DNA from: Trichosphaerium sp. ATCC 40318
Lineage: Eukaryota > Protista > Tubulinea
NCBI GenBank assembly: GCA_038496445.1
Contig: JALMLS010000577.1
Span: 620,001 to 684,000 of the forward strand
Length of the DNA: 64,000 nt
Direction of reading: 5' to 3'
Every line of letters begins with the position of its first letter. The stretch's first letter is position 1. A program made the translations under genes and the position numbers. The notes beneath the pieces were generated by a model. It was not told where the DNA came from. It ran no database searches and saw only the letters and a program-made list of their open reading frames with translations. Below, one piece after another: positions 1-5,512 of this stretch.

Positions 1-34
1 TTTTTTCTATGTCCACTTTCTCAAACTGTACTAG

Positions 35-2779
35 GTTCTGGTATGAGAATCCGGATCAATTCACGACTGAAGAGATTAATACTATCTACGGAACAACATT
101 ACATGATCTTGTTACACGTAACTTTGATGTGAGTACAGAAGCATTCCCGTTATCTGGCTTCTTTACACTCAACAGACAGCTTGAAAACCTAGGTACCTGT
201 CTTCCGAAACTACATATCAATCTAACAAAGTTATGTAGCTTCTACAACCTTCTTTGAAGAGTTTCCTTCAAGTTTCGATGAAGTGATTGACTTGTCTTCG
301 TTGTATAGACTTGCATACAGGTAAGCTTGCTCGGAATCATAAATTCATTCTTATTTTTTTCTTTCTAAAGGATTGATGAGAATGAGTACGAACTTGAGAT
401 AATGCTTCAAACGAAAACGACCGGATGGGTTGGTATTGGTTTAGAACCATACGAAAACACAATGAAGGATGCAGGTACAAGATAAAAGTCAAAAAATGTA
501 TATTCACGTCTACTACTTGTAGATATTATTTTATGTCGCACCCTCGAGAACGGTACAGGAATATGCGATGATAGATATGCTGTTGATGTTGGAATACCAA
601 CACTTGATACAGGTAAGAGTCCTAGTGCCATGTAACACTTATATGTTGTTAGATCTTGGCGGATCAAATGATATTGTTATGATTTCTGGAAAAGTGGAGA
701 AAGGAAGATCGTACGTTTTGACAGTATTTGCTTGGAGTGTGTTTTACTTACAACGAATATTGTAGTTTGTACAGGTTTATAAGACCATTAAAAGCCACAG
801 ATGATAAACTAGATAAGTCAATAGATCCACGAGATATGAAAGTTATTTTTGCTTTTCACCCGACATCTTCTGATCTAAAATATCATGGACCGTCAAGGTC
901 AAGTTCTATAATGATTAACTTCCACGAAGGCAAGTAAAATCATTCCTAATAATTCAGTCACCAAAACCTTCTTGAGATTTTGTGTAGTACTGTAAAACAT
1001 GCAAGTATCTAACTTCTTTTTTTAGTTCTACTTTTAGATAAGGTTTCCCCTGCTATTGTATGGACTTCTGTAGTAGTAGCATCAGCAGGCGTTTTGCTAT
1101 GTATTTTCATCGCAATAACTATGGCTCTGTTTCCTAAATACTTTCACTACCAAGATCTCGTACGCGCTTTGTAAACAGAACCCTGTTTTTTTCCTTATTT
1201 TTTTGAACTAGGTCTTTTGTTCTATTATATTGATTGGCGTGGTTTTTGCCATGATGACTACTTTTATTGAACTTCCAGATCAATCTGAACTAACGTGCAC
1301 GATAATAACATGGTTTTTGGGATACGCCTTCGTTTGTGTCTTTGGGTACGATACTTTCCTTGTTGCCTTGTTTTCTGCTTCGCATTTTATTCTCACGTCA
1401 CATAGTTCTTTATTTGGACGTACATGGAGGATATGGCGTATAGTAAGCGGAGGAAAAAAAATCAAAGTAGTCAGGGTAACCAGGCTAGATGTTTTACAGG
1501 TACAATCATTCAACTATTTACGTAAGCTTGTTAAAAAACCAACTTTGTTCTTAGGTTATTGGAGCATTATTTGTTTTTGAGAGCATTTTCCTTATAATAT
1601 GGACCATAGTCGACCGTCCCACACCCACAAGAAGTACGATTAACTAGTTTTTATCACGTACAATGACCTCTCTGATAAAATATTTAGCTGGTAGTAAATC
1701 TATATGCATGAGTAGGTCTCTATGGTGGTGGGGATTTTTTACATTATATAAAGTCTTGTTTCTATTTATTGGAGTTGGCCTTGTACGCACCTCCCTCTTT
1801 TTGAGTTTCTAATGAATCTAATGATATAATATTAGGGTATTAAGACTAGGAAGTATGCCAAGGAATTCAATGACTCAAAGGAGATTGGATACTGTATTTT
1901 TGTTATCACGTTTACAATTATGATTGTTGGTCCTATTGGGTTTTTCCTTCGTGATATCATCTTTGCAGTATATTTGTGCTTATCACTAGGTACTAGCACT
2001 TGCTTGGGTTTTTTTAAGATTCATGCCTCTTATGTTTATTGTTTAGGTGTTTCTGTTCCGTTTATTCTAGCTACTGTTATACTGTTTGCGCCAACACTAC
2101 AAAGGTTCGTGTCTTTTTTTTTCCGAAAGTTGATGAGAAAAAACAATTCACTGCTTTGACTTAACTATTTCCTCATCTGCTTTTTTCACAACAACTACGA
2201 ACCTTAAGTGACAACTATTATCGTTGTCAAAGCATAAAATTGACGTGATTTAGAATCTACTTTACAAACAAACCTCCTGCGAAGTATAGAGGCGCTTCAT
2301 CATCTAGTGGTTCTGTATCTAAAACTTATGCTTCTACAATCGCCTTTCAATCAAAACAAATGTCACGTGAATCAGCTGGCAATAACGCTGCTCACTCTAT
2401 CGTTTTTATACATGACGAGGAATCCAATAGCGATGACGAACATAATTCTATTACATCATCAGTCACTTCAGTCAGTACCGAACTGAGTAGTGCTCCTACC
2501 GAGATGGAACCCTTAGAACCTAAATATAGAAGGACACGATCAAGAAAAAAGGCTAAACAAGAGACAACATCTAGACCAAGTAAACTTACAAAAACGAATA
2601 GTGTCAAAAGTACAAAGGTAAAGTCAAAGCTAACAAAACAAATGAGTGGTATAAAACAACTTAAAAAAACAAAGAGTGTAAAGAGTACAAAGCCAAAGAG
2701 ATCTAAAAAAACAAAGAAGGAGGTTAATATTAAGAATATTGAAACTCCAGAACCAGAGCACTCAGGAGAAGATGTATAG
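35..2779 (+). CDS. 5'-truncated multi-exon gene: C-terminal end of an animal-type heme peroxidase domain + DOMON domain + class C (7tm_3, GABA-B/Grl-like) 7TM domain + Ser/Lys-rich tail
   Basis: Exon at ~35-193 reads FWYENPDQFTTEEINTIYGTTLHDLVTRN (peroxidase/DUOX C-terminal signature). DOMON: TGWVGIGL..NTMKDADII..DDRY...LKYHGP. 7TM: LFGRTWRIWRI, LIIWTIVD, KTRKYAKEFNDSKEIGYCI. Exons are joined by GT-AG introns; stop at 2779. Confidence 0.75.
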
Positions 2780-2987
2780 TAAACGGTTGACAATTTTAGA
2801 CATGTAATAGTAAATATTGTATATACACTCTTGTTACTTGCTTTCAGCTACAGTAATCTGTACTTGAATTCTCTCTTTCAAATTCTAGTTCATGTACTCC
2901 TACTTCTACTTTACAAAGTACTATAAATGTTTGACTTGATACATAAATTTACATCTATACTTTGCAAGCAGTTTATTGAAATACATT

Positions 2988-4923
2988 TTATGATTCTTCA
3001 TTCACCCATGCCTTGATGTATTTGAATACAGATTCTCTTGCGCGTATAAGAGACTCAGAATCCGTTGGAGAGGAAGGAAATATTGTGCAGCCATGGCCGT
3101 ATGGTGGATCAACCTAAAAAATTATCAATTAGATGCATGTTCTCAAACAAAGAGAAAAAAAAAGAATCACGTGCAACAATAGATGGCATTGTATCAGAAA
3201 GAGACTCTAAAATATTCCACGCAGCAACTGGGTCATCATATCCATTTGTGAATACAGTATTTGAGCTCTTTATATTGCGTCCACCATACCTTGCACCTTT
3301 TACAGTCAATGTGAGATCAGAAGTCGGTATCTTATTGTAAGTACCTATAGTCCAGTTTGTGTTTGGACGTGGCATTTCTGTCTTTGGAAGCTCTGGGAAT
3401 AGTTGATAGCACCAGTTCTAATGAATTATTTAATAAACTGTGAATGGGTATTGCATGGTAACGTACTTCCCATACTTTCAGATTAAACTCTTGAGGCCAC
3501 ACAGAATCTTGAGGAGATGTGAAAAAAACAGGAATTTCTGTGCACATCTGAAACCACCATGCTCTTTTTTGAGGTAAGTTTGTTTCAAAGCTAACTTAAA
3601 GTTGTTTCTTTCGAGAAATTGTGGACTAAGAGGATGTTGTACCTAGATGAAACTGCTAAGCCGTTTGGATTTGGTTCAAAGCTTTGAAGAGAAGATAAGA
3701 ATCCGTGTATAATATCAGGTGACCACTGAAAGAATATGTTACTTCTTGTTAGTACCAAGAATGCTTCAAACGGATCATCTTGGTATTCCGCAAATGTAGT
3801 ACAGAGTCCAGAAATATTACTGTACTGGACTGGTATAACAACAATCAACAAAGAGAGCAAGTATAGGTTAGGTAAGTCCGCTTCAGATATAACTGTACTT
3901 TGCTGTAATCTCATGGTGAGTTCTTGCCTCCCTACAAAAATATGGGTTCAGTACAAGCAAAACATACTTGGATAGCAGATTGATGTCAATGTTCGTACCA
4001 GCGTCAGTTTGTGAGAGTTTGCTAATGTTAGAAACAACTGACATTACACCATCGTAGCACCTAGGGTACTGTTGTTTGAGTACCATGGCATAACGATCGA
4101 GATACAGAAAGCCTTTTTTGGAAAAGGAGGTTATTACAATTAAAATGTCTGTACTGTAAACGATGTACCGTTTGTTGTAGTTATCCCAATGGGTGCCGAA
4201 GAAGCCCAACTAGCCTTAACGATGTGTGGATACTTCAACCTCATCCATGCCGATAACATGCCTTAGCGTTAGTTAGAACTTGGCAAAAAAAACGAGAAAA
4301 TTATTGGTGCACCTGGGTAGCTCCCACCTACTGTGATAACAGGGCAATCGCCAGAGCAATACATTTTTGTAAAATCGACTATAATTTTAATGGTATCTTC
4401 TACATAAAGTTCGTTAACATCTTCAAGTTGTCTCCCCAACAACCCATTGTCTCTTTGACGTACCAAGAGCTTGTTCTGCTGATAGATACACCAAGTTCTT
4501 TGTCTCTAGTGTATTTACAGGAAAGCTTTCTCCGTAGTATCTGTGCTCACGTGCTTTGGCGACAATAAGTTTAAAAATCACGTGTATCGAAGTGACAGTT
4601 CGTAACGTACCAATCAAAAGCGCTTTTAGCTCTTTTGCTAAAGCAACGAATTGATACGGCGCGCTTAGCGTAGTATTAGCCATTGGTGCTTCTCCTGGCA
4701 TGTATACTATCATTGGACCACCAGGTTGATAGTAATCGGTTGTAACGAGAACTTTTTGTTGAAACGTTTCCGTGTTTAGAGGATCAAAGTGGTCTGTTGT
4801 TTGTTTGTAGTAAATGATGTCTACGTTATTAGATAAAACTTCTCCTATTGGCACATCATGTAACAATACAGCAGTAGTCAGACTTATACACATCAGTGCT
4901 ACGGTTGTTACTAGTAATTGCAT
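2988..4923 (-). CDS. Secreted serine carboxypeptidase, family S28 (PRCP/PRSS16-like)
   Basis: Signal peptide MQLLVTTVALMCISLTTA; QTTDHF; EHRYYGES; LSAEQAL; nucleophile motif GGSYPG; WWFQMCTE; FTNGYDDP; multi-exon. Confidence 0.9.
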
Positions 4924-5512
4924 CTTTGTCACCGTGTTGTACTTTAGATGTCAACGATGATATTTTGCGATGAAAGCTGTTGACTACTATTAAGAAAACA
5001 ATATTTAGAGAATTCAGCGAAGACAATACAAAAGATTGAAACGAAAAAAGAGGTGTGCTAGATCCAGAAAATAACGGAAAGGATAGTAGAAAAGATAGAC
5101 AACAAGAGAAAAAGGAGAGATGACGGATGCCGGAATATTATCCATAGAGCCGACTTGAAAATCAAGGCAGTTTTGCTTATTTATCAAAGAAGGATTGTAT
5201 GAAAGAAGTTCCACTTGTGCAACTCACATTTTTCTAGAAACGTACCACAATAGACCAGTGTAACAGATTATTGAGAGCTCAAGCAAGACGGGTACCACCC
5301 AAGAATAACTTGAAATCGAAATCAATATTAAAACCCAAAACCAAATTGGTTTAATCTGGCAACTTCAACTGAATTATATCATAGGGAAAATTGCTTCGCA
5401 ACTTGTAAAAAAACCCACAAATTTTTCATAGTATTAACTATTTATTTCAAACTCCTTCATTTGCACTGTAACTGTCCACGTGTTTTGGTTTTTCATACAA
5501 CAACGCAATAAC

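Follow-up and report, generated by a model that had tools for sequence, protein, structure and literature searches.

A class C receptor gene of the amoeba Trichosphaerium sp. that carries a DOMON domain on its membrane domain and a peroxidase-fold tail before the DOMON

The window analysed here is a stretch of 64,000 nucleotides from Trichosphaerium sp. ATCC 40318 (assembly GCA_038496445.1, contig JALMLS010000577.1, positions 620,001 to 684,000 of the forward strand). Close to its 5' end lies one expressed and intact amoebozoan gene, which encodes a class C, GABA-B-like G-protein-coupled receptor (GPCR). A DOMON domain sits atop the seven-transmembrane (7TM) domain of this receptor, and the tail of a peroxidase fold precedes the DOMON. 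The head formed by the peroxidase-like domain and the DOMON is, on balance, probably a sensor that holds one or two haems rather than an enzyme, and changes of ligation or redox state would be passed through the DOMON to the membrane helices.

Pairing of splice signals over the three forward frames of positions 1-2900 produced a model of 14 exons on the plus strand (window 35-2779), in which all phases are consistent and 642 codons lead to a stop at 2777-2779. Twelve introns are of the GT-AG type, many of them with a GTAC donor, and one is GC-AG (930-1025). They measure 40-149 nucleotides and leave the reading frame unbroken, in DNA that is AT-rich (about 36-40% G+C). Exon 1 follows an acceptor AG at 33-34, and its 5' side remains open; thus, the start of the gene lies upstream of the window. 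The parts of the gene are as follows:

35-192, 239-320, 371-474, 523-612, 653-710, 766-929, 1026-1159 (+): exons 1 to 7 of the model
1212-1345, 1406-1499, 1555-1633, 1688-1782, 1836-1989, 2047-2104, 2254-2779 (+): exons 8 to 14 of the model
35-192 (+): exon 1, internal; last 34-35 or so residues of the peroxidase-like domain (FWYEN...RNFDV..AFP), then a linker to RQLENL
193-238 (+): intron 1, 46 nucleotides, GT..AG, phase 1, between the peroxidase tail and the DOMON
239-929 (+): exons 2 to 6, the complete DOMON domain, with GWVGIGL, NTMKDADI, DVGIPTLDT, IFAFHP and KYHGPSR
930-1025 (+): intron 6, GC-AG, 96 nucleotides; the cDNA contig of run X2 skips 96 nucleotides, with the cut at 929/1026 within a slack of 2 nucleotides
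1026-2104 (+): exons 7 to 13, the stalk and then the class C seven-helix membrane domain
2254-2779 (+): exon 14, cytoplasmic tail of about 174 residues with the stop at 2777-2779, within the X2 contig
2780-2810 (+): 3' untranslated end, short; the X2 cDNA contig ends at 2810

Pfam and protein searches were made with single exons or with related proteins as queries, and the joined model of 642 residues served only for the frame check and for hydropathy. According to the original prediction, a peroxidase tail, a DOMON and a 7TM domain of the GABA-B/Grl type follow one another in one spliced frame, and this order is borne out by the 14-exon model together with the exon-level matches. Exon 1 matches An_peroxidase (PF03098) at profile positions 487-523 of 530 (expectation value, E, 2.6e-4; 20.1 bits against a cut-off of 25), which places only the tail of this domain inside the window, as had also been predicted. 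DOMON (PF03351) is matched by exon 3 at positions 11-45 of 124 (E 4.3e-4) and by exon 6 at positions 95-124 (E 0.24). The class C membrane domain, 7tm_3 (PF00003), is matched by exon 8 at positions 45-87 (E 0.05) and by exon 12 at positions 185-220 of 251 (E 1.9e-4). The single-exon matches all fall below the whole-domain cut-offs of Pfam, that of 7tm_3 being 33.5 bits, and the colinear related proteins P0005, P0010, P0013 and P0001 score 114-147 bits. The exon-level matches are weak because each exon holds only 30-50 residues; their order and their profile positions are right. A chance open reading frame or a pseudogene was ruled out by the intact frame over 14 exons, the expression and the conserved motifs. 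A second copy of the gene in the window was ruled out as well, in that a tblastn search of P0005 on all 64 kb matches only positions 33-2156.

Most of the splicing can be read directly from RNA. An assembled cDNA contig of 1749 nucleotides from run X2 joins the exons as modelled from the exon 2/3 joint to position 2810, the GC-AG intron included, and so confirms 12 of the 13 introns. Since this contig spans the DOMON, the 7TM domain and the cytoplasmic tail, all three stand on one mRNA; the possibility that the DOMON and 7TM parts are separate genes, on which the original prediction had asked for a check of the transcript, is thereby removed. The last two joints are also confirmed by run X5, which belongs to a different study. 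At the 5' end of the X2 contig (window 369), a template-switch cDNA adaptor (...CAACGCAGAGTACGGGGG) stands before the last bases of exon 2, which identifies this end as that of a 5'-truncated cDNA and not as a start of transcription.

The contigs of run X3 over 1-318 and 298-620 are unspliced. Run X3 retains two introns that are removed in X2, which comes from the same sample, so its reads represent pre-mRNA or DNA, and the unspliced X3 contigs say nothing against the splicing of intron 1. The difference between the unspliced X3 contigs and the spliced 5' exons of X2 may come from carried-over pre-mRNA or DNA, or these introns of about 46-50 nucleotides may often be retained.

The joint between the peroxidase tail and the DOMON, intron 1, has to be judged from other evidence. 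Retention of this intron brings the frame to a stop at 255-257, and the locus could then be read as a pair of neighbouring genes, one for a secreted peroxidase with its end at this stop and one for a separate DOMON-7TM protein. This reading draws on the public RNA contigs, in which the splicing of 193-238 is not shown and the only contig across it (X3, 1-318) is unspliced, and on the X2 cDNA, which starts inside exon 2 behind the adaptor; the first of these points also counts against the single-protein model. The local structure of the DNA speaks against two genes. The gap between exon 1 and the first DOMON exon measures only 46 nucleotides. Exon 2 encodes the first DOMON strand and lacks an ATG, and a stop at 223-225 closes its frame on the upstream side. 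The first in-frame Met is located in exon 3, and a protein that started there would miss both a signal peptide and the first strands of the DOMON. Moreover, the X3 reads that leave the intron in place are those of pre-mRNA or DNA, and transcriptome-derived relatives run through the junction.

Comparison with other sequences also argues for one protein. When exon 1 (52 residues) was searched against 1.84 billion representative proteins, 11 matches at E<=1e-3 were obtained, and the best of them are peroxidase-DOMON proteins. By tblastn on the 64 kb, residues 581-1072 of P0005 are colinear with window 33-2156 (summed E 1e-62). Colinearity across intron 1 holds for transcript-derived proteins of three other amoebae and for three proteins from JGI environmental contigs. 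A paralogue-like locus, L001, is found on a 1087-nucleotide Logan contig (SRR28285721) with a G+C content of 0.364, like that of the window, and with GTAC donors. The peroxidase tail and the start of the DOMON occupy positions 365-1083 of this contig, and an intron of about 45 nucleotides follows ...RQLNASS at the same place as window 193-238. Intron 1 is thus supported by the missing start in exon 2, by the intron at the same place in L001 and by the relatives that are colinear across the junction. It can be stated with high confidence that the peroxidase tail is fused to the DOMON and 7TM domain in one protein, and the arrangement as two genes is very improbable. The locus L001 lacks the extra intron that the window has inside the first DOMON strands. 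Another protein, P0002 (1116 residues), matches exon 1 in five distinct segments (E 9.4e-7) and has no An_peroxidase match in Pfam; it looks like a repeat protein that shares a short motif.

The membrane domain has the features of class C receptors. In the spliced model, six hydropathy peaks between residues 230 and 436 exceed the threshold, and a seventh helix, at about 438-460 in exons 12-13, was recognised by eye. Like GABA-B receptors and the Grl receptors of Dictyostelium, the protein combines a seven-helix membrane domain of class C with a short stalk before helix 1 and has no cysteine-rich domain; about 20-30 residues lie between the end of the DOMON and this helix. The pair of cysteines in the third helix (ELTC, exon 8) and the second extracellular loop (KSIC, exon 11) is shared with these receptors, and the latter Cys forms an invariant column of the family alignment. 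Shared, too, are TWRI in the second intracellular loop (GRTWRIWRIV, exon 9) and FNDSK before helix 6 (EFNDSKEIG, exon 12); the loop between helices 5 and 6 reads TRKYAKEFNDSKEIG ahead of helix 6. The class C motif PKxY of helix 7 is not kept (APTLQRIY). Among solved structures, the 7TM domain of P0005 is nearest to GABA-B R2 (E 2.5e-19), with the metabotropic glutamate receptors further away. The 7TM exons of the window tile P0005, P0010 and P0013, and their identity to the 7TM domain of P0005 is 23-60%, highest in the second intracellular loop.

The difference from GABA-B and Grl receptors is in the ectodomain, which is a Venus flytrap in theirs and a peroxidase-like domain plus DOMON in the window receptor and its relatives. 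No Venus-flytrap domain was detected by Pfam in the exons of the window or in the full-length relatives, where the ectodomain consists of An_peroxidase and DOMON throughout. The flytrap is a mark of the typical class C receptor, not of the 7TM fold. A membrane domain of the cytochrome b561 type was considered and ruled out by the seven helices, the class C motifs and the lack of His pairs in the helices. In the cytoplasmic tail encoded by exon 14, an acidic Ser-rich stretch is followed by a stretch rich in Lys, Ser and Thr with repeated SVKSTK. No Pfam family was matched by this tail, which may serve regulation by phosphorylation or of the arrestin type.

The same architecture recurs in other organisms. 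In Pfam searches, An_peroxidase, then DOMON, then 7tm_3 were found in this order within single proteins: P0005 (1136 residues), P0010 (908 residues), P0013/P0001 (922/683 residues) and P0007, which is cut. A profile search added P0016 (1017 residues) with the same three domains, and the cut fragment P0009 contains peroxidase and DOMON only. For P0010, P0013/P0001 and P0009 the sources are Trinity transcriptomes, those of Rhizamoeba saxonica, Pyxidicula operculata and Amoeba proteus, and for P0005 and P0007 they are short JGI contigs free of introns. A signal peptide and then seven transmembrane helices are present in P0005. Besides these proteins, two genomic loci, L001 and L002, are colinear with the window gene. 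L002 (1200-5400; also L003) is a genomic contig of 51% G+C from another organism, with the order peroxidase, DOMON, 7tm_3 and with far fewer introns.

The head also occurs on a different output. P0014 (1332 residues, from a JGI contig) and P0015 (950 residues, from Stereomyxa ramosa) were retrieved by a word search with the peroxidase tail and DOMON of P0005; in both, a single transmembrane helix and a protein kinase come after An_peroxidase and DOMON. The identity over the peroxidase tail and DOMON is 41-42%, and P0014 also has a signal peptide. These receptor kinases agree with the 7TM relatives of the window receptor in the peroxidase-DOMON head, the replaced distal His and the invariant Met and His of the DOMON, and differ in that one helix and a kinase stand in place of the 7TM domain. 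The presence of one head on two unrelated outputs fits a portable sensor module.

The peroxidase-like domain is complete in the colinear relatives, with An_peroxidase scores of 300.8 bits in P0005 and 333.3 bits in P0010. In canonical peroxidases, the His and Asp (DH) of the distal motif GQxxDHD are required for the reaction with H2O2. This pair is replaced in all five relatives that cover the site, by TV, TT, IA or TG, and by AV in L002, where the motif reads GQWVAVDI and holds no His. In the alignment of a relative to the bacterial-type enzyme 8s6c (E 4e-61), GQLLTVDI stands opposite GQFLDHDL. The distal His is kept, as GQF(I/L/V)DH(D/E), in 8s6c and in the seven of seven nearest peroxidases that cover the site, which are assigned to bacteria by their accompanying domains and source names. 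The Asp of the covalent haem link is lost in 5/5 relatives, and the Glu of the second covalent link is kept in one of the six that cover it, mostly with Lys or Gln in its place. Loss of the distal His cripples the reaction with H2O2 and slows the formation of compound I by orders of magnitude. Since the relatives have lost the distal His and Asp, the head is very probably no working peroxidase. The original prediction of a redox- and peroxide-sensing receptor therefore stands in part: the architecture is confirmed, with the three Pfam domains in single transcripts of relatives, and a two-haem redox module that senses peroxide is a candidate function only.

Other residues of the site are conserved. 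The proximal His (RYGH) and the distal Arg (GDxRxN) are kept in P0005, P0010, P0013, P0007, P0014 and P0016, that is, in every member that covers them, and FRYGH is present in L001. The distal Gln is kept in four of five relatives and is lost in P0016. The calcium-site motif T..D.S..YG is kept in 4/4 relatives aligned for it. Judged from these residues, the peroxidase-like domain may still hold haem. The bird DUOX P0027, placed in the same alignment, has lost both the distal and the proximal His.

A working redox enzyme is nevertheless one explanation of such a head. The 7TM domain would then be an anchor or a reporter of turnover, the DOMON cytochrome would exchange electrons with the peroxidase-like haem as in the cytochrome of cellobiose dehydrogenase, and a product or turnover, rather than the binding of a ligand, would matter. 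The conserved proximal His, distal Arg and calcium site are in agreement with this, and an enzyme-type partnership is suggested, as a lead only, by an ESM Atlas cluster of eukaryotic proteins of about 750 residues, mostly from Mucoromycota, which have An_peroxidase and DOMON and no membrane domain. On the other side, loss of the distal His is universal among the receptor-linked relatives that cover the site, the residues of the covalent links are mostly lost, and two signalling outputs, GPCR and kinase, fit a sensor better. A tethered enzyme is thus a rather unlikely explanation, and the residues point to a haem-holding sensor as likelier than a working peroxidase.

The closest peroxidases outside the receptor family (P0017-P0023) are bacterial; several have a sorting tail of the type IX secretion system (T9SS), and one carries the label Mycobacteriaceae. 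Among solved structures, the peroxidase domain of the relatives is matched best by 8s6c, a short enzyme of 528 residues. The head may descend from a bacterial-type rather than an animal-type peroxidase.

In the DOMON, the conservation is concentrated around two candidate haem ligands. The five DOMON exons form a gapless tiling of the DOMON of seven relatives, and these relatives score 52-75 bits. TMKGxDI and YHGPTR are the longest invariant blocks of the family, and the window reads NTMKDADI and KYHGPSR at these places. The Met and His of the two motifs, which the original prediction had named as potential haem ligands, are invariant in the window and in 7/7 relatives at a spacing of 93-94 residues, and an Arg follows at His+4, as in CG8399. 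In cellobiose dehydrogenase the DOMON ligates b-haem through Met and His, and the predicted haem ligands are Met286/His379 with Arg383 in CG8399/SDR2 and Met90/His174 in plant HYP1 (PMC10691727, PMC10784544). Sugar binding is another known role of DOMON domains (PMC10691727, PMC10784544).

The DOMON of P0005, as modelled with AlphaFold from the family alignment, is a beta-sandwich (pLDDT 81, pTM 0.80). The model matches the haem cytochrome domains 6jt6, 4qi3 and 1d7b of pyranose, cellobiose and ethylbenzene dehydrogenases, and it resembles a cluster of plant CYBDOM proteins by shape, with a TM score of 0.81. Sugar-binding modules of CBM9 appear among its weaker fold matches. In an alignment to the DOMON of DBH, which is not a haem domain, the Met faces Leu/Glu. 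The DOMON of the receptor is likely to bind haem, as far as the pattern of conserved residues can tell.

These data have to be set against a haem-free head, in which a decayed peroxidase scaffold and a sugar- or ligand-binding DOMON would form a module for binding or adhesion. Such a module would recognise a macromolecule or a metabolite, for example of prey bacteria, and the protein would work as an ordinary ligand-gated class C GPCR. Peroxinectin-type adhesion proteins and the peroxidase-homology domain of vertebrate DUOX are precedents. That five of five relatives lack the distal His and Asp, and P0016 the distal Gln as well, is compatible with this explanation, and so are the sugar binding of DOMONs, the non-haem DBH as the closest solved DOMON and the CBM9 modules among the weaker matches. 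What speaks for haem is that all relatives covering the proximal His and distal Arg retain both, that the calcium-site motif is kept in the four aligned, and that the Met and His of the DOMON are invariant and lie in its two most conserved motifs. Moreover, P0027 belongs to the vertebrate DUOX group, which we take to be haem-free, and has lost the proximal His, unlike the receptor family. A haem-free module is accordingly considered unlikely, although less so than a tethered enzyme.

The haem-holding sensor is preferred because the distal His and Asp are lost while the proximal His, the distal Arg, the calcium-site motif and the Met and His of the DOMON are kept. Several points weigh against it. 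Haem binding, the ligand and the signalling are predicted properties for every member of the family. The body of the peroxidase domain of the window gene lies upstream of the window, so that the state of its distal and proximal sites is taken from relatives only, and five relatives make up the whole comparison of the distal site. In the public gene index, no longer contig that reaches upstream of the window is on record for the open reading frame products window:2360-2776:+, window:9-254:+ and window:3594-3914:-. For the DOMON of P0005, the loop with the His is modelled with low confidence, and the best match of the model is the non-haem DBH 4zel (TM score 0.70), with the cytochromes at about 0.55-0.62. 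A residue-level alignment of the Met and His to a solved haem DOMON was not obtained, and sequence and profile searches of the PDB found only DBH (E 0.023, 0.32).

If the head holds haem, its mechanism may be outlined as follows. One or two haems would alter their ligation or redox state on meeting an extracellular small molecule, for which O2, NO, H2S, H2O2 or a reductant or oxidant are candidates. The DOMON, which would abut the extracellular loops, would then change its conformation and switch the 7TM domain and G-protein signalling. The occurrence of the same head on a single-pass kinase in other amoebae speaks for a portable input module of this kind. In a more specific form, which is offered only tentatively, the receptor would be the first GPCR with a haem-based head, with a five-coordinate haem in the disabled peroxidase fold and a six-coordinate DOMON cytochrome, and would read O2, NO, H2S, peroxide or redox potential at the cell surface.

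Three groups of known proteins share parts of this design. CYBDOM proteins (SDR2/FRRS1, CG8399, HYP1) have an extracellular PF03351 DOMON directly before a multi-pass membrane domain, with Met and His about 84-94 residues apart. Their membrane domain, however, is a b561 electron conduit, whereas the window receptor has a 7TM domain with no evident transmembrane electron path and a peroxidase-like domain in first place. DUOX resembles the receptor family in a peroxidase-fold ectodomain on a multi-pass membrane protein, without the distal His as seen in the relatives, and DUOX 7d3e is among the PDB matches. In DUOX, EF hands and an NADPH oxidase follow in place of DOMON and GPCR, and the proximal His is lost in the DUOX compared (P0027) and kept in the receptor family. 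In cellobiose and pyranose dehydrogenases, a b-haem domain of the DOMON fold is joined to a redox-cofactor domain in a secreted protein, and the fold matches listed above include them. These are soluble enzymes, in contrast, whose partner is a flavin or pyrroloquinoline quinone (PQQ) dehydrogenase, and no sequence similarity to them is detectable.

Neither a GPCR nor a receptor kinase with a peroxidase-DOMON head was found to be described in the full-text literature, a coverage outside which subscription journals lie. The large papers on GPCR evolution that the full-text search returned make no mention of peroxidase, and the one paper in which DOMON, haem peroxidase and GPCR occur together treats them as separate diatom genes. 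The architecture itself is undescribed in the literature searched, while the proteins of the relatives are already contained in public transcriptome sets.

Class C GPCRs sense their ligands through the Venus-flytrap clamp, and we know of no GPCR that has a haem domain as its sensor. Known haem-based sensors are mostly intracellular and feed cyclases, kinases, phosphodiesterases and transcription factors. A haem-holding receptor at the cell surface would represent a new input logic for G-protein signalling and a candidate oxygen or redox sensor for amoeboid aerotaxis and the avoidance of oxidants. The family also offers a natural experiment, with one head on two outputs, 7TM and kinase, and with a likely enzymatic ancestor, the nearest peroxidases being bacterial and catalytically intact. 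Within the family, this could be tested on three residues, the proximal His and the Met and His of the DOMON. If the head proves to be haem-free, it would still be an undescribed ectodomain for class C receptors.

A convergent neighbour of the receptor gene lies at window 2960-4950 on the minus strand. Its first coding open reading frame (4426-4932) identifies the product as a serine carboxypeptidase S28 by Pfam (E 2.9e-19), and the gene is spliced at 3112/3174 and 3294/3343 in runs X1-X3. The 3' end of this gene is only about 150 nucleotides from the end of the receptor cDNA.

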